Origin: Klebsormidium nitens
Taxonomy: Eukaryota; Plantae; Klebsormidiophyceae
Length of the DNA: 47,677 bases
Reading direction: 5' to 3'
NCBI GenBank assembly: GCA_000708835.1
Contig: DF237595.1
Location: 1 to 47,677, forward strand
Positions 1 to 25,580 of this stretch are shown in pieces. Numbering within the stretch: position 1 is the stretch's first letter; every line of letters starts with the position of its first letter. Below the pieces are notes generated by a model. That model was not told the DNA's origin and did no database searches. It saw only the letters and a program-made list of their open reading frames with translations. The position numbers and the translations under genes were made by a program.

Positions 1-1682
1 GTTCTAGACATCGAGGGGCAGCGTTCGACGAATACAACCTTTCGAACAGTTCTGTTTTCCTCCGGCCGACCCGGCATTGTGCTCGTCCGCATCCGTCCGC
101 CCTGTTTTACCCCGACCACCTACTACTAGTACTGTACTGTTTGACTAAAATCAAAATGGGCTAGGAGGGACACCGCCTAGCATTTTATGCATTTATTTTG
201 CTTTTTAACGGGGCGAAATGGTCTGCAAATCCTTGATTGGAATTTATTTTCAGTTCAGATTTTTGGGCAAGTCAAAATATATTTAATTGTTGCCCAACCG
301 GACAATTGGTACGGGTACATGCAAGTTACAACGTTTGCTGATGTTCCTCGGTAGAATAAACCGGGTAACAATTGTCGTACCGATTGACGTCGAAACTGCA
401 ACTTTTCTTGGTGCGTCGTCCCAATTACGGTAGTCGAACACTGCACACCTGACAGCAACCCATTAGGTGTGTAGGTACGTACCCCGAGACTCTGCCAGTG
501 CCAGTGGAGTCTGCCGGGAATCGGTCAGGTTTCTTCCAGCTGCAAAATGGCACCACTACTGTAGGCTGTACAGTGTACATAGTACATACATAGCTACCTA
601 TCCTCTCAGCTAGAGGCACACCTAAAATTTAGGCTACCGTAACACAAGACCCACTTGCAGGCGCGAGGAGAGAAGTGACTCGCCTGTTTGGAAGACGCAG
701 GGATGCCTAGCTGCCGCCTGCGCCACAAAATCTGCAAGGAGTAAAGTGGATCAGGTAAGAACGGAACGTCGCTGCTACTGGCATTCTCTCCTGGTTTGTC
801 CCTGTCTCATACACAAAAGGGACCAACGGTCTTTCTTTCAACAGCTGAGCGCTCCACCTTTCACTGGTTTGAGGAAAGTAGCTGGAGTCAAGTTGTAGGT
901 TCTGTAGGAGCTCTAAGAGCAAGATCTCTTGACTAGGAGCACCAGTGAAGGGTCACTTTGTGCGCTTCTCTCTGCACTGCTCCGACTGCTGCCAGACTAA
1001 CAGACAAGACAACGAGAGCTGGACACCACAATATGGGTATCTGTTCCGGACGGGGGCCTGCCGAAGCACTTTCAGAAAGTCATTCCAATGGCATGCCTGG
1101 TCTGGTTGCAGCGCCTGCCAGCATGGTGTCCGCTGAGCCCCACATGAACGGGACTTCCCCAGCTGTATCTGCAAAGAGTGTACACCCTGAGCCTCAAACA
1201 GCTCACATGGAGCAGCACCACAATCATGCAAATGGAGGAGCGCAGTTTGCCAACGTCTCAAAATGTCCATTTGCTCATGGCAGTGTGGGTGTCTTTCCGT
1301 ATCCAGGTGCGGCAATCCTTTCTGCCCCCTCAAATCTTTGTGTGAAAGTTTCAAGGTTGGACCATATGCTTAGCTCTTATTAGAGCCAAGGCATTACCAA
1401 CAGACTGAAGTGTAGTGGCTTTTATTCTTCAGAGCTAACTCAAGTATTGGACATTGACTTTGTCCAAAAGTTTTAGACTCTTCTGGATAATGCCTTCAGA
1501 TCCAAAGCTTGCTCAAGAAGTCCCCTGTTAAAGGCTTTTGAATGCTAATGTTGGGCTGCCCTCTTCGAAATCATACTCCTGTACACTTAAAAACACCTAC
1601 AAGATAAGTGACACTGGATCTCCGAAGAAGTAGACCTGACATCAGAAGCAGTTTGCAAATGCCAACCTTCCATGTCTTGCAG

Positions 1683-4600
1683 GATATGTCCATGGGAAGA
1701 ACCCAACCATCTGTCCCACGGGGTGCAAGCCTTCCCTTGACGTCGGCAAGAACGAGACCCCAAAGTAGAAGCTGATTCGTGAAGCAGTGGAGTATCAGGT
1801 ACACTGTCACAGAAGCATGAAACCCATGTGCGGTTGCCTGTGCTTGCTTGCCTATAACTGCAAAGATTAGGGCTGCCTAATTATGCATTACTGTCAGTTA
1901 GCTTTGCTGTGGGTCCTGAGGCTTCCACAATTTGAATGGCAGCAGCCTTGTTCATGAAAAAGATCTACAGTGAATTGGATATACGTCATTTGCACTCGCT
2001 GAGTGCTTCAGAGATGGCTATGCATGAAGCAGTCTGCTGGAAGAAATTGTCCTGCCAAAGCAGTTGTTCATTCAGCTCATCTTTAGCAATGAGTTCTGAG
2101 ATTGTCCATAGCTGACAGGGCCTTGGGCACGGGAACTAACCTGTGCTTTTCTTTCCGTGTACTGCAGGACCTCTTTCACAAGGAATTCCACTCCAGTCCG
2201 GAGGTCAAGGCTGCCAGGATCAAGGAGATTTTAGAGTCCATTGAGGCAACAGGGACGTATTCTCACACCTTTGACGAGCTGCAGCATGGTGAGCATTACA
2301 CTGTAAACCTTGTGGAGCAACACAATAGGCAACATACACGACATTGACTTTGAAGAGACTAGGCATTTGCACGCAAACTCCATAGAGATGTCTGATAGAC
2401 TGGTACAAAGGTCAGCATCTGTTTCCCTTAATTTAAAAACCGTCCTGCCTGAAAGGATTCAGAGCAAGTTTTCAGCATAATGCACAACACAGATACATTA
2501 GCTCAGAGTCAGCCTGGTGAATCTGGTGACATCATATGGAACTTTCTTTGAGAAAATCTTTGATCAAGCCAATGGGAAGCAGCAATTTCTGGCCTACTAT
2601 GTCAACGCACTTGCACCAGTCTCACCAAGAAAAAGCAGCTCTGCTCGAAAGATTGATTTCTATCCATTCCGAGCAATGGTAAGCCCCTGCTACGTAGAGG
2701 TCAGTCAATGACATGTACGCCGACTGCGTGTCTCAGATCAGTCATAGTTCAACATGGAGATTACTTCTGGGATCTTGCTTGAACCTGGCTTGAACCCTAA
2801 AAATATTCAGCTTATAAATGTGAGTGGCAGAAGCACCAGGTCAGTAAGAAAAGCTACCGCAAGGACTTGGGTTCAGTTGTGGCATTGATATATGGGTATT
2901 CTGGTCCCTGCTCTGAAAGGGCCATATCAACGTCAGGTTGACCCCTCCTTCACCCAACCAGCTACCGTTGTATCACTCTTCAGCAATCTGCTGCTTAATG
3001 CATCTCAAATCTCGTGCAGGGGCGCGAGTATCCTGGAGGAACGCCCCCAAGTGCTCCAACAGAAAGTTCTGGGACACCATTCAGTTGCGCGACAAGCGGC
3101 ATGTTACAACGGCTGAGGTGAGAGTTCGGGGTCAGGCCTCAAGCATCTAGAATTGGTGGTCATCTCGCAGTTTACGAGAGATAGATACTGCCACAGGTTG
3201 TTTCCTTTGTTGTCTCTCAGCTTTCTCTAGACTTGCAAGACGAGCTGGTTAGCCCTGCGCAACACTGGCAGAGAACAGTTCTCATTGCCACGGTTCGATC
3301 TGAACTCTGTCCGTCCACTGTTTTGTTTCAAGGCATGCACCAGGCCTGCTTGGAGATGCTTGAACTGGCTGGCAACTCTGGTGCTACTGAGCTTTTCATC
3401 TCAGTGTTCCCTCCTGAGCATCCGCTGACCAACGAGGGGGGCGCTCGAGTTTGGAACAATCAGCTGATGCGGTTTGCCGGTGAGACTAGTTACTCTACAG
3501 CATGCTGTTGGGGACTTCAAGCCAATTACCTCTGCTTCGAGCACTCAAATGTTAATATGTATGGTTGCAAAGCTGGTCTGGAAACAAACAGGGGTAAGCA
3601 AGGAGTTTTTGCCATTCTAGACTCGCAGAGTCGCTATTTTCACAGGAGATCAAGTAGAATGCCCTTTCCATTTTGAGGAAATGTCACCTCAAATGCCATT
3701 ATGTATCTTTTGCTCATTGCTTTCATGGACTGTCCAGATTTAGTTGCCGGTTTTGGCTGCAGACATCGCTGGAATTTGCTAGCCTGATCCTGCATCAGTT
3801 CTTTGACCAGTAGTACGGGGCAGGTATTGAGGTCGTTTTTGAGTTAAGATGGCGTAGGTTCCATTGAGCGTAAGTAGAAATAAGACTCGTGGGCTTCCTT
3901 GCGCCAAATGGCAGGGCTCGCAGCTGTGTTACAGGAGCACGGAAGCTTGATTTAGAGACCAGGCAAGTCGACTTGTTCAAGAGGCTCTAAAGTCAATGCA
4001 ACGGGTCCAGTCAAGAGGAAACGTCAGGGAGGAGGAAGCTGTGTTGCAAGACAGTGGGGATTCTCTTCTCTCGAAGCTGTCAAACACGTTTGCTGGCTCT
4101 GCCCAAGTGCAGTCTAATTGTCGTTCAGGATATCGGCAGACTGATATGAGCATCAAGGGGGACCCTGCGGAGGTGGCCTTCACGGAGATGCTTATCAGGA
4201 TGTTCGGATGGAAAGGACCAGGTACGGGATCTCTGGCACCCCTCCGGGGCCCTGCTATCGAAAGATAGCATGTTTCTGCCGATGTCTGCTTCTGGGGGTG
4301 ATTCTGGTCCGCTGTGATTTGCTGGAGATTCTTCGAAAGAGATATTCTACTGATCGAGTTCGCTCTAGCTCTAGAGTCCTCAGGCACGTTTCCGTACTTA
4401 TAGCACGGTGTGTATTGTAGTATATGTTGAGGCTGGCGAGCTCTAAAGAGTGGTATCAGGCGCTTCGGAGAAGCGAAAAGGGTCTAGCTAAATTAAACCC
4501 AAAACCCCGCACCTTCTCCGGATTCCAACTTCCTCACGTCCCACTCTTCCGTTCCTTCGTGAAATCGCTAATCCCTTTGCGGCCTGGAGAGTACCTTTTC

Positions 4601-6900
4601 TTAACGGGCTTCTGCTTCCGGATAAACTGCGCCAGGTCAGATCTCGCTCGTTTGCGAGTCCCTTCGTGCGCGCACAGCACATATCGGGTGCATGGACTGC
4701 TCTGTCTCAATAATCCACCAGTTCGTTAATCTCTGAAGTTACACGCTTGGAGCCTTTTTCATCCCTCTTCTGCAGGCACGGACTTCGACATTCTTCCCCT
4801 GGTCCTGCAGCCCAGCCCGACAGACGAGCCCAAGATGTTCTCGATCCCCCCCCAGTACATCCCGGAGGTGCGCTTCTTGCACCCCCAGCACACGTGGTTC
4901 GCCAGCCTGGGCCTCAAATGGTACGGCATCCCCTGCGTCTCCAACATGCGCATGCGCCTCGGGGGGCTCCTCTACACGGGCGTCCCCTTCACCGGCTGGT
5001 AAGTCGTCTGTTCCGGTGTCGCTGGCAGCGGAACCGATCGAAGGCGTTTTGGTGGATGCTCGAGGCTTGTCCAAGGCGTAGCTAGCTTAGATCCAGAGGA
5101 GTCTTGTCACGCGTCCTTGCCGGTGCCGTCGAAAGCCATTGCTTGCCATCGCCCCGCTCTGGAAGCGAAGAACAGACGGTTTGTCTTCCTTTCTGCCTGG
5201 TGTCGGTCAATAAATGTTTTAGACAACAAACTGGGGAGTGCCGTGATGTGAACACATTTCCATTGTTTCTTTTCCCCCAAGAGCACCAAAAGCTTACTCA
5301 AAAGCGTACTTACTGGCCTACTTGGATCCTGCCTCTAGACCAAGACAGCCTGAGCTTGATATGATCGTTATGCTTCAAAGTGCTAAGAAACTGCCTCAGA
5401 GGACACTTCTCTGCCTTTTAATTCCGGCTTGACAGGCGGGATGCTTCCCCCTTCCCTTAGACGGCATCAAGAACTTCATTTTTTGTGCACGCCTTTCAGG
5501 TATGCCGACGTTGAGATCTTGCGCAATCTGAGCGACGAGTCTCGCTACAACAAGCTGTCACTTATTGCCGAACGCCTGGGCTACAATACGTCAGAGAACA
5601 GCAACCTGTGGAAGGATGCGGCTCTCCTTGTCTTGAACCAGGTACGTTGTGAAAGATTGAATCTTTCTGCTAGAGTGCTTCGGTGTTTCGGTCCCAACTT
5701 CCTGATGAGGCTTGAGTTGGAAGAAGATCCAAGCATCAACAAAGTTCTGGGCTAATAGACTGCTATTACGTCAACCAAGAGAAAGCCAACTGCGATTCAG
5801 CGCACCCTTGATTCGACAATTACCTCGGCGTCAAAGCATGGCTCTTTTCACTAAAGCTCAGTACGATTTGTTAGGATGATCAGCATCACTCTTACTATCG
5901 TGCTCGGTGTGCTTCGAGGGGTTTCTGAACTCCCTTGGGATATTTGGTGTGATTGTAGTAAAACTTGAGTTTTGTAACACCTGACCGATCCGTCTCGTGA
6001 TACTTTCGCAGCCTCTTGAAGATGCAAACTTCGGCAAAACGTTCCGGTAGGACTGTGAGAGCCGTGTGCTGTTCCTCCTCACCGTTGAGCCTCTTGCCCT
6101 ATAGATTCTGGCCATTGTCCTCTGATTTTGCCAGTGACTGAGAGCCTTTCTTCTCTTACAGGCGATTGTCTACAGCTTCCAAGAGGCAGCATTGGGCATC
6201 GCGGACCACCACACGCTGATGGAACAGTTTTGGGTTTGGCAAGCGGTGCGTGAATCGGTTTGCCGCCTCTTCATGTGCATGATTGAGCCGCCTCTCCCCC
6301 TGCAAAGTTGATCTATCGTTTCTAGAGCTGCTCTTGCCTTCTGACGTTCTCAAGGTGCGGACGAAAACTTCAATTGTTCGGTTTTGATGGCTTCATTCTA
6401 CGATCGGAAGAATCAAGAACTTTCTCTCAGTCCTGAGCCATGGGGCCTTCCTTCGAAACATTCAGAGATTATCTTGTTCGGACACTTGGATCGCCAAGAA
6501 AAAGCAGAAAACCATGAAGGACAGGTCGATAGCCGAATTGTACCTTTTAGGAGTAGGCTGCCATGTTGCCCCGCTTTCCCAAAAGAAAACAGCCTTTGTG
6601 ATCTTTCTGGCCCTCAACTCTCTAACAGTCGGATTGGTTGAACGAGCAGAGGTGAATTTCGGACAACCTGTCTATAATTCCGTGCCTTTGTAGGCCTTGT
6701 TCGCAAATTCCGAAGCCTGAGCCCGCTCAAGGATCGATACCTCGGCCTTCTCCTTTGCTTGCAGGAAGAGAAGGCGAAGCGCGGCTACGTGTCCGTCAAC
6801 TGGAAGTGGGTCATTCCGCCGGTCGCCTCTAGCACCAGCCGCTGCTATTTAGGGCTCAGCAAGACGACGGAATATACGCTGCAGCCCGCGTATGTCGGGG
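1683..6900 (+). other. NOS oxygenase (heme/pterin) domain exons
   Basis: CPTGC (CX3C zinc motif), ATGTYSHTFDELQHGARVSWRNAPKCSNRKFW (heme-thiolate Cys codon 3052-3054), RVWNNQLMRFAGY, FDILPLVLQ, KWYGIPCVSNM, PFTGWYADVEILRNL (substrate-binding Glu), DHHT, NWKWVIPP. Confidence 0.95.
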
Positions 6901-9900
6901 GCCCCGGTTGGCTGAACTTTGCGAAAGCGCACTTCGGGCCAAACTTCGACCGGTCCCCCGGGGGCTTCAACCCAGGGGTGCTCAACCCGTACGTCATCAA
7001 AATGCTCGCGTGGATCAAGATGCATACCGCAAAGCCGAGGCCGCGCCTGCTCATCCTCTAATCCACCGTCACCGGGACCGCACAGGCGTACGCCTCTCAA
7101 GTAAGACGTGTGACGCGACTAACCAGCTTTCTTTACCCGCTTTACCTGATCGGGGACAACTTCGAAGGTCTTTCGCTGGCTGTTGTTGATGATGTGCAGC
7201 CTTTGGAGCGATACGAGCAAGCGAAGTCAGAGGACTGCATACAGGGTCCCCTAGACTATAGGGCACGCCGTCACATGCATAGCTTGACAGCGTGCCATAT
7301 CGCGACGTTTCACAGCATGGGTGGTCGACTGGGTCCGCAAAGTGGTTCCCAAGCGTGTGCCTGAGCGCCTCTGGTCTGAACGCACACCGCCTGCACCACT
7401 GCAGCTCCTCTCGAGAGCAAAGCGTATCCTTTCATCCCGCTCGACTGCTGCTCAGTCCCGGCCTGCCGCTTCCTCTCAAAACAATCCTTACAAATGTGCC
7501 GGTTCAATGTAACGAAGAAGACTCTGACTCGCCCTGACCTGGCATGCGTCGCCTGGAAAGTAGCAGAATGGACTTCGTTGTTCTAGTCCTGCCCTCAATG
7601 CTCTGAGTTTAATGCTGCTTCTATGCTTTTCGATGCATTGAGTTATGAGCGCGTTGAACCTTTAGCATTCGACTTCAAAGCAGGTAGACCAGAGGGCTGA
7701 TCCCTCGCACCCGCACCGAGCCAAACCCGCCACCACCTGTTCCATTCCTGTCGACTGAGCTTACAGTCGACTGACAGATGGGCTGATAGTTGACTGAACC
7801 GACTAATGCTTCTTCGTGCAGCTGGCCGGTCTCACGAAGGACCCTTTCAAGGTGCAAGTCCTGAGCGTCAAGGAATATGAGGACGCCAAGTTCAACGCCT
7901 CTGACGTCATCATACTTGTGACGTCGACATACGGGTCCGGGGCGCCCCCCGCCACGGCCACCAGGTGATTCATATGCCGCAATACCAAACTGTGATAGAA
8001 GCGTCCCCTTGACTAACTACTGGTGATTTGAGCCCCAGAAACTGCGCCACTCGATTTTAGCCGCTTCGATCATAAAAGTGTTGAAATGAAGTTGCCCAGG
8101 AGGTATCCTCTTCTCGAAGGTAGTTCCGATCTCTCATATCCACTGCGATAAGAGATTTGGGAAAGCGGCCACTTCTTTAACCGATGACGTCTTGCCACGT
8201 GCCAGGCTGAGAGTCTGTCAGAACATTCGACACCAATAGGCCCAGTTTTACACAGGCCTTTGTGATCCTTCACGCCTTTCACAGTTGGAAAGGTCAGATC
8301 TTTACCAGACCAAACGGTTCCTGAATCATTTGACGAAGGGTCCGCCCCTCAATCATCTGCAAAGCCGATGAATTCAAGTTTCTCTGCCGTATCTTGTACA
8401 ACTTGAAAATAGGCCTTCAGTGCTTTATACTGACGCTCTTGTTTCGCTCACGAAGGTTCTTGTCTTGGCTGAGCCTGCAAGGCGACGACCCCAAGTCTCC
8501 TCTCAAAGGCAAGGCGTTTGGCGTGTTCGGACTTGGGAGCAGCTGCTACCCTCGGTTCTGCGCAGCGGCCAGCCTGATGCACACCCTCATGCTCGCAGCA
8601 GGTACAGTCTAACGGAGAAATCCACGGTCCCCTTGCAACTCCTCTCTAGTCTGATTCGAGGGATCTATCCTCTAAGCCGTCCAGCTTGGTGGATTTTTGC
8701 CACTTTAGAAATCTTTCCTTTCCGAGAAAGTTAACTAAGAGGCAATACTTCTGTCCGACAATAGCTGTTTGTCAATTCGTTGCCTTTCCTGCGGAGACGA
8801 GCGGCATTCTGCGGGGTTGGTCAACCCTGAGGTCCAGAACGGAATACGGCTCTCCATTGCGCTTCTCGGTGTGTGTCAGACGTCGAGTTCTGCGGCCTTT
8901 CGGGATGTTTCATCAACGACCTGCGATGCTTCCTTTGACGATGCTGGTCTCGGTCTTGTTTTCTTCGTTGCCCTTCCTCAAAGGACTTTGTTAGAATCTG
9001 GGCGCATCCTGTGAAGGCTTGCCAGCTGGTCTCGACTCTTTCTCCGACGACTTGAATCTCGTTCTTGGTCGTGGAAACAGGGGGAAATCCTATCGCTCCG
9101 GTTGGGAAGGCGACCAGCTTGGGGGCCGCGAAACTGCGTTCCGTGAGTGGCTTGGAGACGCGTTCCGTGGGGTTGCCACCGAGCAGGTATGCCTACCTTT
9201 CTTCTACCTGGCGGAAAGGATGCGTTCTCATGATTCGAAGCGGGTTTGGATTCTGGCTGCGCGTGCACTTCAATCGCTCCTTCTCATAGTGAATCTGGAA
9301 CGTCGGAGATAAGTGATTTCGATTGAACCCTATGGCAAGCGGTCCCTCTATCCCTGCCAGAAGTGGAGGGCCTTTTCCAAAAAGTTGAAATAGGACATCC
9401 TCTCTTTGGAATGCAAAGTCTCATAACATGATCCCTTCCTGCATCCGAACCCGCAAACCTGATTCCGTATTGACGTCAAGAGCGCCGGTCCTGCAGCCTG
9501 GAATACGAGAGGCCTGCGAAGGCGTGCAGACGAACCTGAAGACTCTCATGGGTGGAGACGCTGGCTTCGTCGCCCGCTACGGGCTCGTCGTCCTCTCAGG
9601 TGAGTTTCGCTCGTTCTTTCAGCAGTTTTCAAAGCGCTAAGAGGAACTTTGGCATCCCTTTGAAAAGACGTAGCCCAAACCTCATCGATCCTGAGAATTG
9701 GTATTGAGCAAGAGCCGAACACGGAGTTGCCCCTTCATCGTAGCCTTTAGCCGGTATCGCTCAGACAAGACTTGCATTCTGCACCTTTTTGGCGCCGCTA
9801 TGCTGACCGCTTTTGTGCGCGCGCAGGCATCAAGAAGCTCGCGGAGGATGTGAAAGTCCTCAAGGGGCCGGTCCTGGAGGCCAAGCCGCTCTTCGACAGT

Positions 9901-11160
9901 ACCGATGGACGCGCGACCACGCTCGTGCGGATTGACATCTCGTCGGAGCCGCTTGCCATCTACGAGCCAGGTTTGGAGCCCTTTCCGATTTCTCGTCGTT
10001 GTTCAATTATTCCAGGGCTTGTTAGTGTGTGAGCTCAATTTTTCCAGTTAACAAGAGTCCCCTGCCCGTTTCTATCTCACTGCATCTCTAACCTGTGATG
10101 ATCGTTTCTTCCTAATCAGACTAACAGGGTCTCAAGTGTCGTCTTGATCTGTCTGGGGTAGTGCTTCTTCTTGAAATAGTTGCTGAATGCGAGCCTCAGC
10201 AGAGGCATTGAGTGATGTCATCGGAGTAACGATTCTGAGCTGGACGGATGAGGGACAGGTGCTCGCACGTCTAGCGGGGGGTTTGAAGAAGACTTTAGGA
10301 CATGGACTTGACCGACTCGAGTTCAGTAGCTGAATATACTCTCCGTCGCTCGTCGAGCTTCCGCGGCTGACGTGAGGAAGAATGCAGTGCGCAAGCTTTC
10401 TAAAGAATGTTGGCTGCAAACTTGTCCGCTGATCCGTTCCGTTGAGCTCCCGCTCCAAATTGACCTGGTCAGCTTGATTGGTTCTACTACACTTATCGGT
10501 CTTGCAACAGCGAACGCGTGATCTTCGAAAACATTTTTGCAGCTTCATGAGTCTCCAGACGAGCTTGAATTTAGATGTTCCCTTTCATTTTGAGTCGATC
10601 ATCCAACCCTTTCAACACAATACTTTGACGGGCGCCCTGACATGATTGTAGCGGGTGCATCTACGACAACCGAGGCTTCAACCTTTAGTCGCCTTTCTTT
10701 CCACTGTAGCCGCCTTCCGATGCAAATTTTCACCCCCCTCTTGTTCCAGGCGACCACATCGCCGTCGCGCCTTGCAACCTTGCCCTGGGATCCCGCCTGG
10801 ACGAGGTCGCCGACCACTTGGAGCTCAGCCTCGATACCGTCTTCGACCTAGAAATTCTGGTCAACAGCGATGACCCGGACGTGGAGGACCCCAAGAAGAT
10901 TTTCCCGCTGCCCAACTCGCTCCGCACGATCCTGACCAACCACGTGGCGCTCCAGGACGAGGTCAACTTCCGGGCCGTGCTGCCGCTCTCGATGGTACGT
11001 GTGGCATCTGTAACTTCGCGTGTGAACATTTGTGATTCACACTAATTAGGTTCTGTTGGAGGACAGATCATTGAAGTACCTTCAATGATTTTGCGTCAGA
11101 TTTCTTGTCCAAGTCCGGTCGGATGGGAGTGTGTTCCGTTTGGGCTCGCTGCAGATTCTT

Positions 11161-11330
11161 CTCAAGGGATATAAAGGTAGGCCAAGATAATAACAAGCTT
11201 CGACTAATACCAAAGCCTAACCCAAAAAAAGACGTGCTCCGCGCCCATACCCACCCTTACTACCAGACTAACCCTGCCCGTCCCATTGCCGTTACCTTAT
11301 TATCATCCGCTTATCATTATCTTTATTGAG
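11161..11330 (+). mobile_element. MITE-like non-autonomous element, copy 1 (NOS intron after the exon ending 10994)
   Basis: Imperfect terminal inverted repeats (ctcaag...gataataa / ttattatc...ttgag), no ORF, and clear similarity by eye to the reverse complement of 12641-12827. Confidence 0.55.
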
Positions 11331-12640
11331 TTTAGGCTAAGCAGCGGTAGGTGATGCATCCCGGAGTTGTTCCTTCCGACCACCGTGGCCGTCGATTATG
11401 TGTAGAACAGGGAGCACGGCCGCCGCCCAGTGAGCGGGTTCAGAAGTTGCTTTACACGCCTCCATCAGCTGTGGATCCAATAAATGTCCAGTCGGACCCT
11501 CGTCTTGAAGTAGAAGAAAGTCAGACGCATTGAATTGAATTCTGCAGTATGCCAAGGGTGCGGACGAAGAAGAGCTGACTGCGCTCGGCGGTGATGAAAA
11601 GCAGTTCCAGGCCTGGCAGGCGGAAGAGCACCTCAGGTCAGTACTCGAACTGGCTCAGCTTGTTTCCGCATTTACTCTAGCTCGTGCCATAAGCATGCCT
11701 GTCTTTCTCAATCTCCGCACGAGTCATTCTGGAAAAACATAGAACATGCTTCGGTCGTTGGTTGTCCACAGAGAGCTTCAATCACCTAAGAAGCCGCCAC
11801 AGTCGATTTCTTGAGCGGCATCTCTGCCTGCGACGATGCCGCCATCCGCCCTGCCCGCATCGATCGCTGCAAAAAACCCGTTCAAACCTTTCCAAAAGCC
11901 CTGGTGTCAAGTCAAAGCCTTCCCCCTATGTTCACGCGTATGCTCTGCGGATGCTGATCCCGCTTACAATGTTGATGGCACAGGTGGGTCGACATTTTCG
12001 ACCGCTTCCCAACGCTGTCCAGGAAGCTCCCCGTCGAGGTGCTGCTTCAGATCGCGCCGTCCATCCACCCCCGCTACTACAGCATTGCGAGCAGCATGCT
12101 GGCAAGCCCGGGAGAGGTGAGCAGTTACTGCGTACTGATCGAAACCACTTTTCTCGTAAGTTTGAGACAGATTAAGCTAAGTACGTGGCGTAACATAGAT
12201 TTTCAAGCACGAAAGCCGATTGTAGGTGCTTCTTTTAAGGTGACTGGTTTAGGTAGCTGGAGACAGCATGCTTTTTTTTGGAAGGGGTCAGAAAGTTGTA
12301 GGCGTTGAAAGCAGCTAGAGATCGTTGCGTCGTTTGTTGCTGAGGATTGCTGGAGGACGTATTTCCGGAACTTTTCTTTGCCTTCGTTCCTCAAGATTCG
12401 TCTTCCTCCAAAAACACCTAACCCTTCGCCTCTCCGTCAAGTGATGTTTCAGCTCTTAGCCTCCCACACGCGGCAATTAGCAGTGCTTCCCGCTAATTTC
12501 CGCTTTGATTTTCTCCACGTATCACGCAAGAAGGTTGGCCAACAGTGCTACTTCTTCTCCTACATATGAGTTCCCTCTCGAGGTACTTTTGCCGGTGTCA
12601 TGTCACGCTGAACACCCCGTCAGGCCACGATCACAATATC

Positions 12641-12827
12641 CTCAGCTTTTATATCGAAGAAAATACATATAAGCCGAGATAATAATAAGTTGAAACCGTC
12701 CTGGGACGGGTAGGGTTAGATTGGTGGTTGGGGTGGGTGTGGGTGCGGAGCAGGTATCCTTTTGGATTAGGGTGTTTTTATTAGCCGGAGCTTTCAATTA
12801 TCCTGGCTTATAATTGTCTATCTTGAG
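12641..12827 (-). mobile_element. MITE-like element, copy 2, inverted relative to copy 1
   Basis: Reverse complement contains ctgctccgcacccacacccacccc...ctaaccctacccgtccc, matching gtgctccgcgcccatacccaccc...ctaaccctgcccgtccc in copy 1. Confidence 0.55.
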
Positions 12828-15722
12828 ATTTATGAGTTGTCGGGCTACGGGGAATCCACCATTTTTCACGTGTTCCCAGGTTCACGTCGTAGTGGGCGCT
12901 CTCTCGTACACTCTGCCCAACGGCAAGCAGCGCTTCGGCCAGTGCTCCAACTACCTCACGCAGCACGTCAAAGCTGGGGACATCGTCCGCTACAAGCTGA
13001 CCAAGGTACGTGGAAACAAGCTTTTATGACAAGTTGCGCAGTTCATGGCGCACAGTTTCCAAAAGTGGCCGGAGGAATGAGTTCCGAACGGAGTGCTCGC
13101 CACCCTTAGAACACTTTCTCGTTTCGTACAAACACATTCGTGCCTCGACGAGAGTTCTCTAAGAATCTGGTAATGGTGTCCCTTCAATTTCGGCTGGCTA
13201 ATACCTTGGTAGGCTGCAAGGGTAAGAATTTGGACCAGTTTTAGTTAGATTTCCTGACCGTAATACGATCTCCTCACGCCAATCTGTGTAGGAGACCCGT
13301 GATCACCGCCCCGCTCATTTTCTGCACCGTGGAGTCTCATCGGTGACGTCCCAACGCTGTCCAAGTGTAGACGGAATCGTCAAACGCCTCTGTTTCCGCA
13401 ATTCTTCTTCAATCAACCAACTTTGTCGCCACTGCTAACCGCCTCCTGACGGCCGCTTAACCAGGTCTCAATCAGGGCTTAACCAGGGCTGATTGAACCC
13501 TCTTCATTCCAGGTCCCGGCATTTAGGCTGCCTCTAGACACGAGGCGCCCGGTGATTATGGTCGGAGCGGGGACCGGGCTGGCGCCCGTCCGCGGCTTCA
13601 TCCAGCACCGCAAGAAGCTGCGCGCGTACGGCGAGATGGGCCCCTGCGTTTTCATCTTCGGCTGCCGCTCCAAGCAGGACCAGATCTGCAAGTGAGTCGT
13701 GCCTGCCTTGGTTATGTTCTGGTGATCGTGCTTGTGGGAATGCTTCCCAGCTTCTGGGTTTGACAAGTACCACGCACGCTTGTTTATGATGGCGTCGTCA
13801 CGCTTGTGTCGACTCCGAATTGTGCTCGAAGTTCTCTCATGTTGGACAGATACTGCAGAGGCGTTCTGATGTCTGTCCGTTCCAGCGAGAAGGGTTAGGG
13901 ACTGGTTCGGGCAGGTCGTTTGGAACGGCTCCCATGCTGGCTCCCATGTTTGGGCATCAGGGCAGAGTTAGGCTGTAAGTTTCTCCGCCTTCTCAAAGAT
14001 TCTCATCCGGCTTGTTCACTTGTGAACCCATCGTGTTCGCAGGGAGGAAGTCGAGGCCGCCGTGGCGAGCGGTGCAATCAGCGCCGTTCTAGTTGCCTAC
14101 TCCCGCGAGCCAGGGGTCAAGAAACTGTACGTCCAGCAGAAGCTCAAAGAGGTGAGGGAAAAGCCAGGAGCTGTTCTTTTGGTTTATCAATTGGAGTCGA
14201 GAACTATGCTTCATCTGTCATCTCAGACAGTCTGTCTCGGAACTCTACTTCTGGGTCTGAGGAGAACGGGACCAGTAGTCTCTGGTCCATGCATTCCGAC
14301 AGTGACTTGGGAAAGCGGAGTTCCTTTGAGATACAGTACATGCGCTGACGTCACTGTTTGTTTTGCAGTCCGCAGCTGAACTGAGCGCGATGCTGGAGGC
14401 CAAGGACGGGCACGTCTACATTTGTAATACGTCGGAAAAAGTTCCGCTCTGAATTTGAGGTTGAAGGTCTCCAGGCTGTGTGGCTTTGATAAGGCGACAC
14501 GTGACGAGGCAACCTCATCCTTCTATTCTTACAGCCCCCTCTTGTTAATAGGGCATTCACGTGATCCGTACGGCCAGCTTGCTGCCTCCCGTTGCCTCGA
14601 TTGTTACTTTTCAGTTTGAAAGCTGCAAGCGGACTGGTGCCAGGAATCTGAACTCCCATTCGACGTTTTGCAGGTGATTCGCGCATGTCTGCAGAGGTGT
14701 CGGCAGTGATCGCGGGCATCATTGGTAAGTCTGGGTTGATCTCAACAGGGAGGAAAAGGAAACCGTTCCGCTGAAAGCTCTTCACGAGTCATCTTCCAGA
14801 GCCTGGTTATGCCGGGGCGTCACGTATCAAGGCGTCTTTCGCGTCGTGCATCCGTCAGTCAAACGGGAAGCCCTCAAATTCCACGTGTTTCTTTCGCACC
14901 GAAAGATCCTTGCAAACCTCAGATACCGGTCCTGAAACCTGGCAGAGTTCCTCCGATGCAATCCTGCGAGAGGGTCGCCGCTCCAACAGACGTGCTTTCT
15001 TGACACCCTCGCTGCTTCTTGGTTCAAAAACTACCTGTGTGTCAAAGGCGTCTTACGACCAGTCCGTTCTTTCGCCAGGCAAGGAGAAGCTGACTGCCAT
15101 GTCCGTGGAGCGCCGCTTCCACGATGACGTCTTCGGCATCGTCTCGAACGCGGGTCAAAAGAACGCGGCCGCCAAGGCGCTGAAGCCGGAGCAAGACACC
15201 CTGAGCGACGTGCTCCGGGCGGTGCCCGGTTCTTCCGTCACGGAGCGTGAGGCGCTGACTCGAAAACTTATTTTTGAAGTTCCTATGTCACGCTCGGGCA
15301 ACTTAAATTCGCACCCACAATCTTGTTTTCGATGGAGTGTTCGATGGTTACCACGAAGGCAGAGAGTTGATATATCGTCGATTTCCGTGATTTCCGCGCC
15401 TAAAGAAGTGCAGACTGGCCGTACAACATCGTGGGTGCGGGTTTAAGGTGCCCGAGACGGTTTTCCTTTTTGAGTTACGCCGTCCCCACTCGGTATCCTG
15501 CGCCGCGCCTTTCTTTCTCGGTTCGCATGAGGGGCTGAGGGGGTTGCTCGTCTGGAGTTGCTGTTCCACTGTCTGCGTACCAGCCGTCGATTGGCAACTA
15601 GGCAAAACAAACAAGAAGAGGCGAACAACAACTGAGAAAAAGATGTGGGAAGGTGGACACAAGAGATAACATTGTAAGGACGCCTGCAATTGTAGTGACG
15701 TGGAGCCTCACCGTTTGTGCAG

Positions 15723-17620
15723 GCGTTCTCAAGGCGTTGGACCACGGCCTGCGATTCGATGTGGCGGACAGCGCCGGCAACACTTTGCTGCACACCGCCG
15801 TGGAGAAGAACGATCCGGAGCTGCTAAAGGTGAGTCGCTTCGTATACCTGAAATGCGGAAATCGATCATTCCCTGGGGCACTGGAGATTATCGGAGAATA
15901 ATAGCCGTTACACGGCAATCTGCTGCATTGACATGCAATATTTGCTGATCTTCTGCAGAACCGTCAATTCTTACCGTACTAGGGTTCTCAGCGTTTTTGT
16001 ACAGAGTCAAACGCGCGCAGGCGTGCCTTCGAGCGCAGTGTCTTCGAGCCGCAGAGTAATCGATTAAAACCTTGTAGATGCCTTGGGCAGAATTGCTCGT
16101 CACGAAACCTGCTTGGAAGTACTTTCCGATCCCCGACCTTGCACCCTGAAGGACACCTTATATTGTGTGATGTGAGCATCTCGTTTCCAGCCCTCGAGCA
16201 GCAGATTATGTCGGGTGGAAACGCCATAAGCAATCAAAAAGCGCACGCGCACACGAACTTACCCTCCCTCACTTTCCTCGACAGGCCCTACTGGCGCGAA
16301 AGGACATGTTACCGGTGCTGATGTCACTCAACCACTGGCACCTGACGCCGCTTGCGCTCGCACTCGCGCGGCGCAAGCCGGAGCTGCAGGCGGTGCTGAG
16401 GGCCGCCGGCGGGTCTGTCGTCAGCGGAATGCACAAAGACTTCTACCCCGTGCACGCGGCCGCGCTGACCAACGACGCAGGTCGGGCGGCACGCTCTTCC
16501 GACTTTTGTACCGTTCACGCCAAGGTCTTAAAGCGTTCTTGTCTGTAGGAATCAGTGCCCAAACGAAACATTTTCAGAGCTCTGACTCACTTCAAAGCCC
16601 ACATCTGTTCTGGATTCCCGTTTTCTTTTCCGTTGCGGAGACGGAGGGGCCAAGGGGATCCTGGCGGCCGCGGTTCGTTGTAACCACGCTCCAAATCGTC
16701 GTTGAGGTTCGCCCTCCGCTCTCTATAATTGCATTGCGCATCACGGAGGCGGCCGGGGCAAACTTTGGCGGCCGCAGTTTCCTTCAACCACGTGTTCAAG
16801 CCCGCATTGAAAGCTAGCCCTCCCCTTTCCGTGAATGCAGTGCACATCGCGGCGCTGAAGGCGGCCGGGCAACCTTTGGCCGCCGCGGTCCCTCTAACCC
16901 AAATCAAAGCCCCAGTCACTCAATCAATTTTCTGTTCCTGTTCCGCAGCGCGCATCACGGAGCTGAAGGCGGAAGGGGCGAGCTTGGCGGCCGCGGACTT
17001 CGTGGGCGCGACGCCGGTCCACCTGGCAGCGGTCCTGGGCAGCGCGGACGTGCTCGCGCTGCTCATCGAGGAGGGGTGCAACGTCAACGTGGCCGACAGG
17101 TGACCGTCAGATACCATTCTTGCCAGATACCGAGACCCCGAACTGCTATTCGTCCACCGTTTTCACAGTAGGCTGTTTCCACGTTGCTTCCCCCCTGCCT
17201 TGACAGTATAAGGTTTCAAGCCAATTCCATCCTGATGGCCCCCTTCTACCCTTTATCCCCTCTTCTGAGAGCATTGTCGTAGGGTTGCCTTGATGCACCG
17301 GTCGATACTCCCTGGTGCTTCTGTTCCTAAGCGAACCAATCATCCTACCGGCACTTTCTCGGAACTTTCTTTTGGGGTAGGCGGTTAGTGACTACCGCCC
17401 TGTTGGTATTTGAGACAGCGAGGGGCTCCTCGCCCGCCTTTGCTGCTATTCGCGGTTTTCTTAACATATTTTGAGGAATCAGTACCTCGCTCCCCGCACG
17501 AGCTAACCGGCATCCCGGCGTTGCGCGCGCAGGTGGGGCCAGTCGCCCCTGATGTGCGCGCTCACCTACAGCCACGCGGGCGCGGCCGCGCTTCTCAAGG
17601 GCGCCGGCGCGCGCGTGACG
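15723..17620 (+). other. Ankyrin repeat exons of the NOS C-terminal extension
   Basis: DSAGNTLLHTAVEKNDPELLKALL, HLTPLALAL, FYPVHAAAL, DFVGATPVHLAAVLGSADVLALLIEEGCNVNVADRWGQSPLMCA. Intron phases are continuous from 15723 to the end of the gene. Confidence 0.92.
16630..16900 (+). repeat. Three degenerate tandem copies (about 105-bp spacing) of the 5' end of the downstream ankyrin exon
   Basis: Exon 16949 begins cgcgcatcacggagctgaaggcggaaggggcgagcttggcggccgcgg. Similar strings occur near 16640, 16736 and 16845. Confidence 0.65.
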
Positions 17621-17699
17621 GCCTCTAGCACCTTCGACGCGTGGCCGAGCATGACCGCGTGGAGCCCCAGCGCGGCCGCGGGCGAAGGCGCCGCGGACG

Positions 17700-19324
17700 C
17701 GAAGCTCAGCGACGAGCGCATTCTCAAGGCGCAGGCGCTGTGAGTGTGCTATATGCGACTGGAGACTTACTCGGAGCGTGTCTTACAGTCTAAAACGTGG
17801 TGTCCGGGACTGTGTTCGCTGTGGAGTGTGCTATATGAGACTGAAAACTTTTTCGGAGCGTGTCGTACATTGAACAAGAGTGGTATCCGGGACTGTATTC
17901 GAGAGCGGAGAATATCATCGGGCAGCTCGAGTGCCACTTAGCTCCCGTAAAGATGTTCCCTGGGAGAAAATTACGCGCCCGGTCTACAATTCAGGAATTT
18001 TGCATTGCATCAAGGCTGAGAGGGTGTGATTAGAACTGGGAGGTTCTGTGTGGTTTTCAGAAACTAACTTGAGCAACGTCCTGTTGATAGAACTTCATTT
18101 GTATGGACGGAATTCAGGAATGAGGATTACGAAGCTTTCAGGCTCTGTAATGAAACGCGAGGAAAGCCCTGGACCGACTTTTCGTTCTGCTACTTTTCTT
18201 TCATCCTTTTACTCCTGCGTCTTTCAAATAGCGAGAATTGCAGTCAGTTGGTTTTCTCCACGCTTCTTTCTTATTTCGTCGCAGTCATCAACTTCCCTTG
18301 ATCTTACGTTTGCTGGCCAATATTGCGATCGACTTAGTCTTGTGAATGAACAGATCAGTGGCAAATCCTCGAGCCCTCGCCGTTTGAATTGGTTCGTTCC
18401 CCCGGATGCAGGTGGGACTTCATGGAGGGTTCCGCGTTCGCGGATAACGACCGGCGCCAGTTCATCGATCGGGGCGTCAAAGTGTTCGAGAACCTATTCG
18501 AGCTGGCGCCGCAGGTGCTCACCCTGTTCCCCTTCAAGGACGAGAACGGAAGACCGCGCCGGAAGGTGAGCGGCGGAATCATTATCGTGCTTGGGGCCAC
18601 AAACAAAACCAATGTAAAGCCCAAGGTATTGCTCTCCGCATCTAATCCCCCAAATTCCATTACTCGTTCTGCAGCAATCCGCCACGCTGCTGTTCCTGAC
18701 GAGGTCTGAATCGAGCGAGTTGCCTGTTCAGTCACTTTTTTGTCGGAAAACGTTCACCAGAACGCGGTTGGCCATTTTCATTGATGGGCCTGGCAGGCGC
18801 ATCCAATTCTTCTTAGTTATTATATGCAAGGCTCTAGCACGTCAGCTTCCCGTGCGAATCCTGTTGGATTTTGAAAGCGAAGCATCTCTCTAGACTGGCG
18901 CGCCTTGAACAGACGCGATCTTTGTGTCCTGACGCCCTCCATTTTCTGCTAACGCAATTTCCGTGTGCTGCGCCATTTCCGTGGCTGATGCCTTTCTCCT
19001 GTGCTGACGTCGTTCCGATGTGCTGACGTCACCTTCCTTCCGCCCCGGCAGGAGCTGGAAGTGCACGTGGAGACGGTCATGTCAACCACCGGGCAGGTGG
19101 TCCGCCAGATGCAGGACCCGGACTCGCTGGCGCCGATGCTGACGGAGCTGACAGCGCTCCACGTCAAGTACGGCGTGGAACTGATTCATTACGACATTTT
19201 GTGCTCCACGTTCCTGCTGACGTTCGAGCAGCTGCTGGGGCCCCGGTGGAACAGCGACTACCGCGACGTGTGGATCTCCATCTTTTCGTTCATCACGACC
19301 TTCGCGAGGAAAGCCTACGAATAA
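17700..19324 (+). other. Globin domain (3/3-type) terminating the NOS fusion
   Basis: KVFENLFELAPQVLTLFPF (B10 Phe, C2 Pro, CD1 Phe), ELEVHVETVM (E7 His, 19064-66), LTALHVKYGV (F8 His, 19160-62), LGPRWNSDYRDVW (H helix), stop TAA ending at 19324. Confidence 0.9.
17742..17902 (+). repeat. Two-copy tandem duplication with an 82-bp period starting at a splice donor
   Basis: gagtgtgctatatg...tcggagcgtgtc...gtggt(g/a)tccgggactgt occurs at 17742 and 17824. Confidence 0.8.
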
Positions 19325-22154
19325 CGCGCGGGAGCGGGGACGTTATTGGTTATTTGTACAAGAGTTGCAAGAGCGGGGATGCGGATGGACTTCCGTATAA
19401 GCTCACCAGCCGCGAGGGTCGTTGGTTGGGAGTGCATGTATCACGCAAAAAGCAGAGCATGAGCAGACGATGCGATCAAGAGCTCATGCGTGCCCGTTTA
19501 TTTGGTCGGTCGCGGGTCCTTTAAAACGGTGCGGTTGATCTTCGTGTTGGGGTTGCGTAGTACGTCTACAGTAGTATGATTATACGGGTGGTGATTGCAA
19601 TCATTTGGTCCCAATGGCACTTACGGTTGCTGCACTCTCACGCATAGATTATTAGGTTGAATGTTACGTAGGTGCTAACGCGGTGGTTAAGTTTTGCTGG
19701 AATGCTCTACAGGGAACCGTCTGTGTCACGCGAAGACGGTTTCAAAAGTTTGATAAGGGTCAGGAGGGAATACTGGCAAAAAACCAGCTTAGATATAAGC
19801 AGCGGGCCGGTGTGATTGCAAGATGTTAGTTTCGACGGGTTGGCACAGCGTCAAATATCTGCATGGATAGCGTCGGCTGGATTACACTTGGACCGGACTC
19901 AAAAAGCATCCTGCGGTTGTGTCAGATTTAAGGAACCAATTATCGTTTTGCATATTTCGGCGGAGGTTCGGTAGCTGCCGCGCAAGCTAGGCCGCCTTGA
20001 GTACTGCATGAGCTCTACAGGGTGAGCTCTACAGGGTACGTGTCAAATTATAGATGCCATGCATGCACATCGTCCACATGCTTTTGTCACTATACCGTCT
20101 GGCACAAGAATAGCAGGTGGTATGTTTATAGCAACCGGTGCGGCCGCCGCTAGATTGTATACTATAAGGCTAAAAAAGTTGCAAAAGCTATCGCGTACGT
20201 CCTGAGGCCAATGATCCTGCAGCCGCCGGGCTCGGGATATACTGACTAGTTCGATCGTTTTGAGTTAAATATTGCAGTATACAGCATGAGTCGTCGATCG
20301 TGAAAATTCTGGCATGAGTCAGCTCGCAATGCACGGTCTCTGTCCAGTCTTATTTAAGACTGCGTACAGCAGAATTAATCAAGCATGATTAATACTACCT
20401 TTCATATGTTGATCTCGGAGCAGCTGGCCGGGCAAGCTAGCACAGTGACATGGCCCACAAGAGGCGGCCCGGCCCGCCGATGCTGCAGCCCTTAAGATTG
20501 ACATAGTGCATTGATCATTTCGATCATCCGCCGCGTAAAGCACTTCGAAGTATGTTAGATACCATGCCTCAGCCTCGGTCACTATATCATGTGTGGCCGA
20601 TTGGGCGGCCAGCGCGACTTTCGTTCACGTACAAAGAAGAATTCTGCTTAAATTGATTGATGGACAGCTCGCAGTATGTGCAGACCGTACATTCAATGAC
20701 CTGACCGCACTTTGGCTTGTCATGAAACGCGTGCACAAACCGTCAGAGCTTAAGTTCTTTTCTGCATGACAGGCGCAAACTGGCGCCAACGTTTTGGGAA
20801 ACAATGCAATCAGTTCGAAACCCGTGAGACAATTTAGGCTCGGAGACTGACGTGCTCCTCTTCCTCGGAGATGGTGGGTAGTGCATCAAACTCATTTTGG
20901 AAATCACGCGGCACGTCGCCTGCAGGAACGAGGTGGAAGGATCACGTGGCCTTTGACAAAAAAACCAGAAAATCTTGTTACTATCGAACTTAAACAGAGC
21001 CCGTGAAAGCAATGTAAATAAGAAGTGGCGACGGCACAATTCCAACTGAAGCGTTCGCCACAAGCAAGAAGAGGTGGCCCGCCTCTTTCCCAGCACGCCA
21101 TGTTCATCAGATCCGAAGGTTCACGTTAGGCAAAATGAGCGGGAACCGAAACCGACGTGCATGACTGGTAACGTCATCTTTTGACTCGCCGTTATGCTGG
21201 TCGTTGTGTTCCATGGGCCAAGCAAGCATCAAGGACGGAAGGAGAGTGTACTGTATAAAAGGAGCGCGTGAAGCTCACATTTGGTTGCCCGCAAAGGCGG
21301 ATAGTAATGATGGTAGCTCCACCACGCCAGGCTGAATCCTGCAAAAGCGGGAAAAAAAAAGTATCTGGATTAACAGGTCTTGCTCTTACAAACGCCCTAC
21401 CAAATCAGAAACGCCCATTATAAAACCATCTGAGCCGGGATATTACACAGAAAAGCAGTCTGCTTATCGAGTGGGGCATCGCCGCCCGATGCACGGCTCC
21501 TTTTCGGTTACGGACAAACGATGGCGATTGTTCTTCGCCGAGGCCTCCGCTTCTGATCCTCGTCTGCCTTTGCTCATATTGCCGGGAAATGGAGGCACCG
21601 AAGAACAACAGGAGCTTCTCTTCCAACAGCCTGAATTAGGGGTGTCCGACCCCACTCTTCCGATCATCTGGCAAAGTAGCATGGGACATCGTCTTGCGTA
21701 TCCGTGATTGCCTTCTGCCGCAAAAGTTGTGAGAAAGTTCTGAAGGATAACGTTTACCCGTGTTCACCAGTGTCCAATTGGTCGATTAAAGTTCAACGCG
21801 CCTCTCGACCGGAAACCAACCTCCAAGCTTCGTGGCTTGCTCAAATCGCCGCAGACACGCACGATACTCGAAATCGTCAAAAGCCCAAGGTCTATGTGCA
21901 CGAATTGTCAACCGAGTGTAAGCCCCCCTTTGAGATTCGGCTGCAAAGTGACTCAACTGGCCCACTCTAATTGCCTTTCGGAATCTCAAAGGCACCCCAA
22001 ACATTTCCGGAGTCCTTTTACATTCCGGTTAACCCGCACAGGCACCAAAGGAGCACAACCAGCGCACCAATCCGGGGGAAAGTAACGGCGACTTGGTGGC
22101 AGAAGCGCCAGCTAAACGGTCGCCGCACTCGCGTGACGATATCTGCCCACCTAC

Positions 22155-25100: not shown

Positions 25101-25580
25101 ACATGGTGTTCCTTCACCCCCAACGAACAGCAACCCCGACAGTACTGCCAAACACTGTAGGAAGCTGCGTTTCCCAAATTCAGCGGGAGAATTGACCATC
25201 TTGTGGAACTAGGGTCTTACCTGCAGGGCCCAGCCCGGCACGGTGTTCTTCCTGATTGGATACCGCAGCCATACCAGATGGTCTTTATCTACATAGCTTA
25301 TGAACGTGGGGGCCACTAAGAGCACAACTTTGAGCAGTAGTAAGGAGACGCATAAGGCCCAGTCTGGCCAGTGCAACCGAAGTAGGCCCAGGAGAGAAAG
25401 ATCAGAGGATTGGCTCTGGCGCCTTGGTCGAGAGGAGTTTGCGGATGGACGCATCGTGGGGGCGGACAGGGAGCGGAAGAAAGTCCCTGCAGAGGAAAGA
25501 GCGCAGACAGGTGGTTCGCTGCGGAGGTTGTCAAGGGCGGTAGCAAGTTTGATGATAACAGGTAAGAAATCATCAATCAT
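22155..25580 (-). CDS. Lipid phosphate phosphatase (PAP2/LPP family), multi-exon, 3' terminal exon not resolved
   Basis: Exons 25580-25221, 24764-24677, 24203-24094, 23577-23487, 22343-22155 with matching phases. Motifs: HWPDW, YPIRKNTVPGW, DMHHGLLG, C1 KSSVGRPRP, C2 SFPSGH, C3 SRVDDNKHHWQDVLVG. Confidence 0.9.
22380..22795 (-). repeat. Four degenerate copies of the LPP exon-5 start within the upstream intron
   Basis: Plus-strand agggccaggtagccgaggcccac (exon, 22313) recurs near 22394, 22613, 22686 and 22766. The first copy is 81 bp from the exon and keeps an intact CAG acceptor. Confidence 0.75.

Follow-up and report, generated by a model that had tools for sequence, protein, structure and literature searches.

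Does one algal polypeptide both make nitric oxide (NO) and remove it? We examined this question at a locus of Klebsormidium nitens NIES-2285 on contig DF237595.1 (assembly GCA_000708835.1); "the window" below is the whole 47,677-nucleotide stretch analysed. A sequence-only reading of this DNA had described a complete animal-type NO synthase (NOS) that runs on into ankyrin repeats and a globin, an NO source and a candidate NO sink in a single protein. An exact protein look-up identified the locus as KFL_006460015 (GAQ90485.1), and a profile-free protein search with the last globin exon (19052-19321) returned a 1205-residue protein with 100% identity at its C-terminus. The gene is known as KnNOS2, and its NOS-ankyrin-globin layout is real and already described, adding no new kind of system. 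As it stands in NIES-2285, KnNOS2 is most likely a recently inactivated, expressed pseudogene, because it is transcribed and canonically spliced yet its frame is broken four times; an intact paralogue, KnNOS1, remains.

The layout was published for this very gene by Chatelain et al. 2021 (PMC8728061), where GAQ90485.1 is named KnNOS2 and called "the NOS-Globin model", with a C-terminal extension of about 380 residues carrying an ankyrin (ANK) motif and an M-family globin. The same NOS-ANK-globin arrangement is given there for Chlorokybus, Mesostigma, Gonium, two Chlamydomonas species and Edaphochlamys (PMC8728061). The sequence-only reading had mentioned a NOS with such an extension as reported from K. 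nitens and had warned that the architecture may not be new; it was right on both counts, the window being the KnNOS2 locus itself.

The domains are in order and the frame is broken four times

We searched exon-sized stop-to-stop pieces of the locus against Pfam and built a joined translation for alignment only, with an X at each break. The 30 exons, all on the + strand, encode a NOS oxygenase, an FMN domain, a FAD/NADPH domain, about six ankyrin repeats and an M-family globin, in that order. This agrees with the placement, strand and order proposed earlier, as exon pieces match NOS, Flavodoxin, FAD and NAD families and the deposited protein matches Ank families and Globin as well. The NOS oxygenase profile PF02898 is matched collinearly by eight exon pieces over positions 15-355 of 362 (15-56, 54-86, 86-136, 132-165, 162-237, 226-285, 285-314 and 313-355), and later pieces match Flavodoxin_1 (positions 20-117), FAD_binding_1 and NAD_binding_1.

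Three gene models from other algae share this domain order and are collinear with KnNOS2 over their full length: Chlorokybus atmophyticus Chrsp180S02868 (P0026, 1504 residues) and Chrsp63S00556 (P0166), and Mesostigma viride Mv07497 (P0144, 1469 residues). As whole proteins, GAQ90485.1 (P0004), P0026 and P0144 all show NO_synthase, Flavodoxin, FAD, NAD, Ank-family and Globin matches, and the piecewise translation of KnNOS2, 1,507 positions long, aligns end to end with both of these orthologues. The heme-thiolate Cys of animal-type NOS is present (codon 3052-3054, in WRNAPKCSNRKFW), and FMN, FAD and NADPH domains follow the oxygenase in order, with RYYSIASS and GAGTGLAP aligning with the orthologues. 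A single open reading frame (ORF) joining all domains, also typical of animal-type NOS, is lacking.

To follow the frame in reads, we compared one DNA run (X1) and three RNA-like runs from three different studies, X5 (2024), X9 (2022) and X16 (2015), over 1101-7100; all runs probably derive from one culture strain. The "complete animal-type NOS" did not survive this comparison. The NOS half is broken at four positions, all of which the Chlorokybus and Mesostigma gene models read through, and three of the breaks are verified in DNA and spliced RNA:

1766-1768, + strand: lesion 1, an in-frame TAG; Gln in Chlorokybus, Glu in Mesostigma; confirmed in X1 (DNA) and in the spliced RNA of X5, X9 and X16
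3331..3333, + strand: lesion 2; acceptor AG 3331-3332 sets the start of exon 5 at 3333, and the conserved frame needs 3332
7059-7061, + strand: lesion 3, an in-frame TAA between LLIL and STVTGTAQAYA at the start of the FMN-binding loop; Tyr in both orthologues
9109/9110, + strand: lesion 4, loss of one G, which puts GDQLGGRETAFREWL one frame on from GNPIAPVGK; known from the assembly only

At lesion 2, the phase-0 end of exon 4 lies at 3117 and there is no other acceptor; the mRNA slips by -1 and meets TGA 3426-3428. At lesion 4 the assembly letters at 9107-9114 are AAGGCGAC, and the orthologues run through PGK-GD at this site.

All four runs had zero differing letters and zero indels over 1101-7100, leaving the assembly without error over the 6 kb compared with reads. 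Lesions 1-3 are real in DNA and in mature mRNA, because no differing letter occurs in the DNA run or in the spliced RNA contigs. We therefore rejected assembly error for these three of the four lesions. As in a pseudogene, the disabling mutations are real in the organism and lie where orthologues read through.

Abundant spliced transcripts carry three of the breaks

Our RNA evidence consists of Logan contigs, which show presence and not absence and make a precise ranking of expression impossible. The RNA runs revealed nine GT..AG joints, which match the orthologue-guided exon ends and, from 3479 on, those of the deposited model. Word depth reached 350-1,800 in spliced contigs vs 0.4-36 in intron bins with any depth. 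In each of the three RNA runs, contigs cover both stretches of exon that hold premature stops, 1680-1795 (TAG) and 6764-7100 (TAA), and show 0 other letters there. The joint 3117|3333 is seen in X5, X9 and X16, and record 11 of X9 is contiguous across it with no extra base. In record 2 of X16, a single spliced contig of 3,522 nucleotides carries all three read-checked lesions.

These data bear on the sequence-only view that an intact, full-length NOS-ANK-globin is made. On this view the breaks would have to be errors of assembly, or be circumvented through recoding (readthrough, frameshifting) or in a minor isoform. Such a protein would accord with the high mRNA level, with a piecewise translation that aligns well with the orthologues over all domains, and with a KnNOS2 branch no longer than that of KnNOS1. 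We nonetheless regard it as very unlikely. The letter-for-letter match of three breaks in the DNA and in the RNA of three studies largely refutes it, and no alternative joint avoiding a break is listed among the contigs of the three RNA runs (1101-7100). Moreover, three kinds of break occur: TAG, TAA and one-base frame shifts, the last of them twice (once from a shifted splice site and once from a lost base). The gene's own terminator is TAA. We rejected an altered genetic code or programmed readthrough on the same grounds.

What the transcript can encode

An ORF scan of the observed mRNA found frames of 119 codons (ATG 1033 to TAG 1768), 327 codons (3335 to 7061) and 812 codons (ATG 9548 to TAA 19324). 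The claim of NO source and sink in one polypeptide thus fails for this genome: standard translation cannot make the fusion from a spliced mRNA that has two premature stops and a frame slip at a splice joint, to which the assembly adds a 1-nucleotide deletion. Ordinary translation of the KnNOS2 mRNA yields a 119-residue N-terminal peptide only.

The third frame invites a different explanation. The 812-codon ORF covers the FAD/NADPH, ankyrin and globin parts and is unbroken after 9110, so that the NOS half might have decayed while this product, ending at TAA 19322-24, is still made from an internal start of transcription or translation, as a reversed-order counterpart of flavohaemoglobin acting as NO dioxygenase or gas sensor. 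About 860 codons after 9110 hold no break, and the FAD and NADPH motifs and both globin histidines are intact. The breaks, four of four, fall within the first 651 of about 1,507 codons, for which a post-hoc test gave a chance of 0.035. The transcript is still abundant. Of the words sampled from 9400-19324, a share of 0.28-0.54 is present in RNA-like runs of six studies; exons make up 0.25 of this stretch and NOS exons alone 0.14, and the ANK-globin exons are probably represented in these runs.

Against this explanation, the ORF lies downstream of 34 ATGs and 2 kb of mRNA, and no internal start was observed; the 3.5-kb contig instead extends from the 5' exons about 1.6 kb past 7100 into downstream exons. 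The ORF also lacks the FMN domain and, at 14423|14674, the Gly of a conserved CGD motif, and a probability of 0.035 is weak for a hypothesis framed after the data. We judge a surviving product from an internal start to be unlikely. The fuller proposition, that selection has kept the FAD/NADPH-ankyrin-globin ORF and that it is expressed alone, serving as a flavohaemoglobin-like NO dioxygenase or gas sensor of a new kind with reversed domain order, seems a little more doubtful again. If true, it would show a fusion enzyme midway through its conversion to another enzyme.

Several points weigh against our preferred reading, a recently inactivated pseudogene. Nonsense-mediated decay should lower an mRNA with an early stop, yet the spliced contigs are deep. 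Neither loss of expression nor relaxed constraint, both expected of a pseudogene, was found, as the spliced mRNA is abundant and the KnNOS2 branch equals the KnNOS1 branch. With the breaks clustered in the first 651 codons, the FAD/NADPH-ANK-globin part may still be under selection. Lesion 4 and all splices beyond 7100, including 15246|15723, are read from the assembly sequence alone, and contigs drop rare variants and so may miss a minor repaired isoform or a second KnNOS2 copy; here too the runs probably sample just one strain. Abundant mRNA and equal branches are to be expected if inactivation was very recent, or if part of the locus still has a function.

We still favor the pseudogene, with some confidence. 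The locus would then be a clean example of very early pseudogenization after duplication, with transcription and splicing intact.

The deposited protein works around the breaks

Exact spliced mapping placed the 1205-residue GAQ90485.1 on 28 exons, 3467-19324. It begins at MRFAG and so lacks the heme-Cys exons; the public record assigns the 5' exons to a separate 152-residue NO_synthase fragment model (1207-3428) that ends at the slip-induced TGA. The deposited model bypasses TAA 7059-7061 with a 108-nucleotide intron, 6978-7085, and regains frame ahead of the loss at 9109/9110 with a 50-nucleotide intron, 8516-8565. We rejected the first of these introns, as RNA contigs are continuous over 6764-7100 and no 6977|7086 joint is listed in the three RNA runs. 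The second we judged artificial, as it cuts the conserved FMN-domain segment FGVFGLGSS...RFCAA, which both orthologues keep. The public 1205-residue protein is an annotation work-around and not the product of the observed mRNA.

A text search of PMC8728061 for truncated, pseudogene and stop codon gave no occurrence of any of them. Our literature search turned up no report of breaks in the KnNOS2 reading frame, including no later paper on them. The correction is potentially useful to the field, as the accession used as KnNOS2 is this work-around, and expressing it or pulling down its partners would mean working with an artefact.

The reductase runs on into ankyrin repeats and a globin

The sequence-only reading had followed the protein past RFHDDVFG (15114-15137), the usual end of NOS, and had left one junction beyond it unsettled. 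Reading on was justified: exon 15079-15246 is open, with no stop before its donor GT at 15247, and supplies both the C-terminus of the reductase and the opening half of the ankyrin cap repeat. Read from the assembly, the junction is a canonical 476-nucleotide GT-AG phase-1 intron inside the first ankyrin repeat (donor GTGAGG at 15247, acceptor AG 15721-15722), with the in-frame product ...SSVTE-R-VLKALDHG.... The features of the extension are:

15247..15722, + strand: junction intron, supported by sequence, the GAQ90485.1 join, orthologue collinearity and a predicted helix
15723-15829, 16285-16480, 16949-17099 and 17533-17739, + strand: ankyrin exons and linker to the globin, about six repeats; Pfam Ank_2, Ank, Ank_3, Ank_4 and Ank_5
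18412-18565 and 19052-19321, + strand: globin exons, followed by TAA 19322-19324; Pfam Globin E=3.8e-12

Were the ankyrin-globin exons instead a separate gene, never joined to the NOS exons, the two halves should part here. The joint 15246|15723 is known from sequence and not from reads, and a stretch of roughly 35 residues beyond RFHDDVFG is predicted to lack order, both of which would suit two genes. The evidence on the other side makes this extremely improbable. The shared exon already couples the reductase end to half a cap repeat with no stop before the donor, and GAQ90485.1 uses the identical join by exact spliced mapping. The word shares of RNA-like runs over 9400-19324, given above, speak for a single transcript in an indirect way. 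A C-terminal alignment including the second Chlorokybus paralogue showed three orthologous proteins from two other genera to be collinear across the 15246|15723 point, and KnNOS1, by comparison, ends 18 residues after its version of the motif. In a structural model of the extension, about 35 low-confidence residues after RFHDDVFG lead to a helix spanning the join, an ankyrin stack with a predicted local distance difference test score (pLDDT) of 80-93 and a globin with a pLDDT of 61-81.

Pfam matches, alignment and model agree on ankyrin repeats and an M-family globin C-terminal to RFH(D/E)DVFG, as in the streptophyte NOS-ANK-globin type. The E7 and F8 histidines reported earlier are indeed intact, with the distal His at 19064-19066 and the proximal His at 19160-19162, and both are kept in the three orthologues. 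The motifs ELEVH and xHVKYGV that hold them are common to the four aligned sequences, and the proximal His aligns with that of 3wfw. A word-indexed protein search with the C-terminal extension returned unrelated ankyrin proteins only, and one with a 131-residue piece across the reductase-ankyrin join returned no match.

Two side observations concern this region. The intron ahead of exon 16949-17099 contains, at 16620-16996, two or three decayed direct copies of the 5' part of that exon and its acceptor region, spaced 104-111 nucleotides apart vs about 99 nucleotides for an ankyrin repeat; the frame is open from 16729 into the exon. These copies may be what is left of an ankyrin-repeat unit that was once duplicated in tandem. 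The strongest matches to the globin exon were giant proteins of 1,842-2,461 residues (P0001, P0002 and P0005), each with 10-14 globin-like stretches and unrelated to NOS.

Exons of the NOS half and neighboring genes

The remaining exons were placed as follows:

703..754, + strand: 3' end of a non-coding exon that lies upstream and occurs in one of the 5' isoforms; its donor GT is 755-756
1033..1306, + strand: coding exon 1; ATG 1033-1035, MGICSGRG (lipidation-like start) and an N-terminal KCPFAHG motif
1683..1798, + strand: exon 2; Cys-x3-Cys zinc motif (ICPTGC); holds lesion 1
2168-2288, + strand: exon 3; PF02898 positions 15-86 together with exon 4; RNA joint 2288|3020
3020-3117, + strand: exon 4; carries WRNAPKCSNRKFW with the heme-thiolate Cys
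3333-3479, 4129-4221, 4776-4998, 5500-5641, 6162-6245 and 6765-7100, + strand: exons 5-10; rest of the oxygenase (PF02898 86-355) and linker to the FMN domain
7062..9109, + strand: FMN (flavodoxin) exons, comprising the rest of 6765-7100, 7822-7964, 8456-8601 and the first part of 9081-9186, from Pfam, frames and alignment
9497..15246, + strand: exons 14-24, FAD/NADPH (FNR-like), from exon map, Pfam, ORF scan and orthologue alignments

Joint 1306|1683 is GT..AG in X5, X9 and X16, as are all five joints among exons 5-10 in the three RNA runs. Two 5' isoforms were observed. In X5 and X9, the upstream exon ending at 754 is spliced to 1112, dropping ATG 1033, and loose ends at 1109 in the contigs of these runs match window positions 725-751 exactly; the X16 contig is unspliced through 1101-1303. 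Splicing to 1112 removes MGICSGRG, which looks like a myristoylation/palmitoylation motif, and the first in-frame start is then ATG 1123. The upstream exon holds a short upstream ORF from ATG 703 to a TAA.

Within the NADPH part, the join 14423|14674 (14419-14426, 14672-14679), read from the assembly, gives YIC-DS vs YICGD in both orthologues and in the diflavin reductase family. The missing Gly of the reductase CGD motif is possibly a fifth, in-frame defect of KnNOS2.

The neighboring called genes encode a 317-residue PAP2 phosphatase (20834-26204, - strand) and a 2444-residue WAC/DDT/PHD/WHIM chromatin protein (27412 onward, + strand). Scans of the window for tRNA and Rfam families gave no match.

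KnNOS2 among algal NOS proteins

KnNOS2 belongs to a streptophyte-algal NOS family in which the reductase continues, inside one exon, into an extension made up of about six ankyrin repeats and a globin of neuroglobin/phytoglobin-like type. Its identity to P0026, P0166 and P0144 is 65%, 59% and 55% in the oxygenase and 43%, 43% and 33% in the C-terminal extension. The Chlorokybus model P0026 lacks one ankyrin repeat and about 17 NADPH-domain residues, and in the Mesostigma model P0144 about 70 residues that K. nitens has are missing from the FAD/NADPH region; both differences probably reflect gaps in the gene models rather than biology.

The canonical NOS of K. nitens, KnNOS1 (P0165, 1099 residues), is the sister paralogue, 67% identical to KnNOS2 in the oxygenase. 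It is annotated as an intact NOS and ends 18 residues after RYHEEVFS, with no ankyrin or globin part. In a tree of oxygenase domains, KnNOS1 and KnNOS2 pair as sisters (support 100/98), each on a branch of length 0.30, and the two Chlorokybus NOS-globins, themselves sisters (93/92), join the KnNOS pair at 96/94. Read most simply, the tree has the ancestor of this clade already carrying the ANK-globin extension, with KnNOS1 losing it after a duplication in Klebsormidium and KnNOS2 being disabled very recently.

Whether a NOS feeds electrons to its own globin and so turns NO into nitrate is a question for which the orthologues with unbroken public models, from Chlorokybus and Mesostigma, are the proper subjects. 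In these proteins, electrons from NADPH would travel via FAD and FMN to the heme of the oxygenase, making NO. The tethered globin, kept ferrous by the protein's own reductase, could then oxidize NO to nitrate or sense NO/O2, as reported for the cyanobacterial enzyme SyNOS. A self-limiting NO source and sink is a reasonable proposal by analogy with SyNOS and the phytoglobins, and a meaningful one only for orthologues whose gene models are unbroken.

Comparison with known NO synthases and globins

The closest functional precedent is SyNOS of Synechococcus PCC 7335, which like KnNOS2 is a NOS with a covalently linked globin; it produces NO and nitrate and so offers a precedent for a NOS-borne NO dioxygenase (quoted in PMC8728061). 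SyNOS, likened to KnNOS2 here by description only, carries its globin at the N-terminus and has no ankyrin repeats. Pfam and alignment found no SyNOS-type N-terminal globin in the N-terminal exons of KnNOS2 (1033-1798). The sequence-only reading had placed the two globins at opposite ends, and correctly so; the same contrast, C-terminal in KnNOS2 against N-terminal in SyNOS, is drawn in PMC8728061.

Among solved structures, a sequence search of the PDB gave as best relatives of the globin domain HGbRL 3wfw (1.3e-9), a class-1 non-symbiotic haemoglobin, 7z1u (1.5e-8), and neuroglobin (1.3e-7). Class-1 non-symbiotic haemoglobins (phytoglobins) and neuroglobin dioxygenate NO when a reductase is supplied, and flavohaemoglobin bears an FNR-type reductase of its own. 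Phytoglobins and neuroglobin are free-standing globins, whereas the KnNOS2 globin is fused. In flavohaemoglobin the globin comes first and the FNR part follows; in KnNOS2 the order is reductase, ankyrin repeats, globin.

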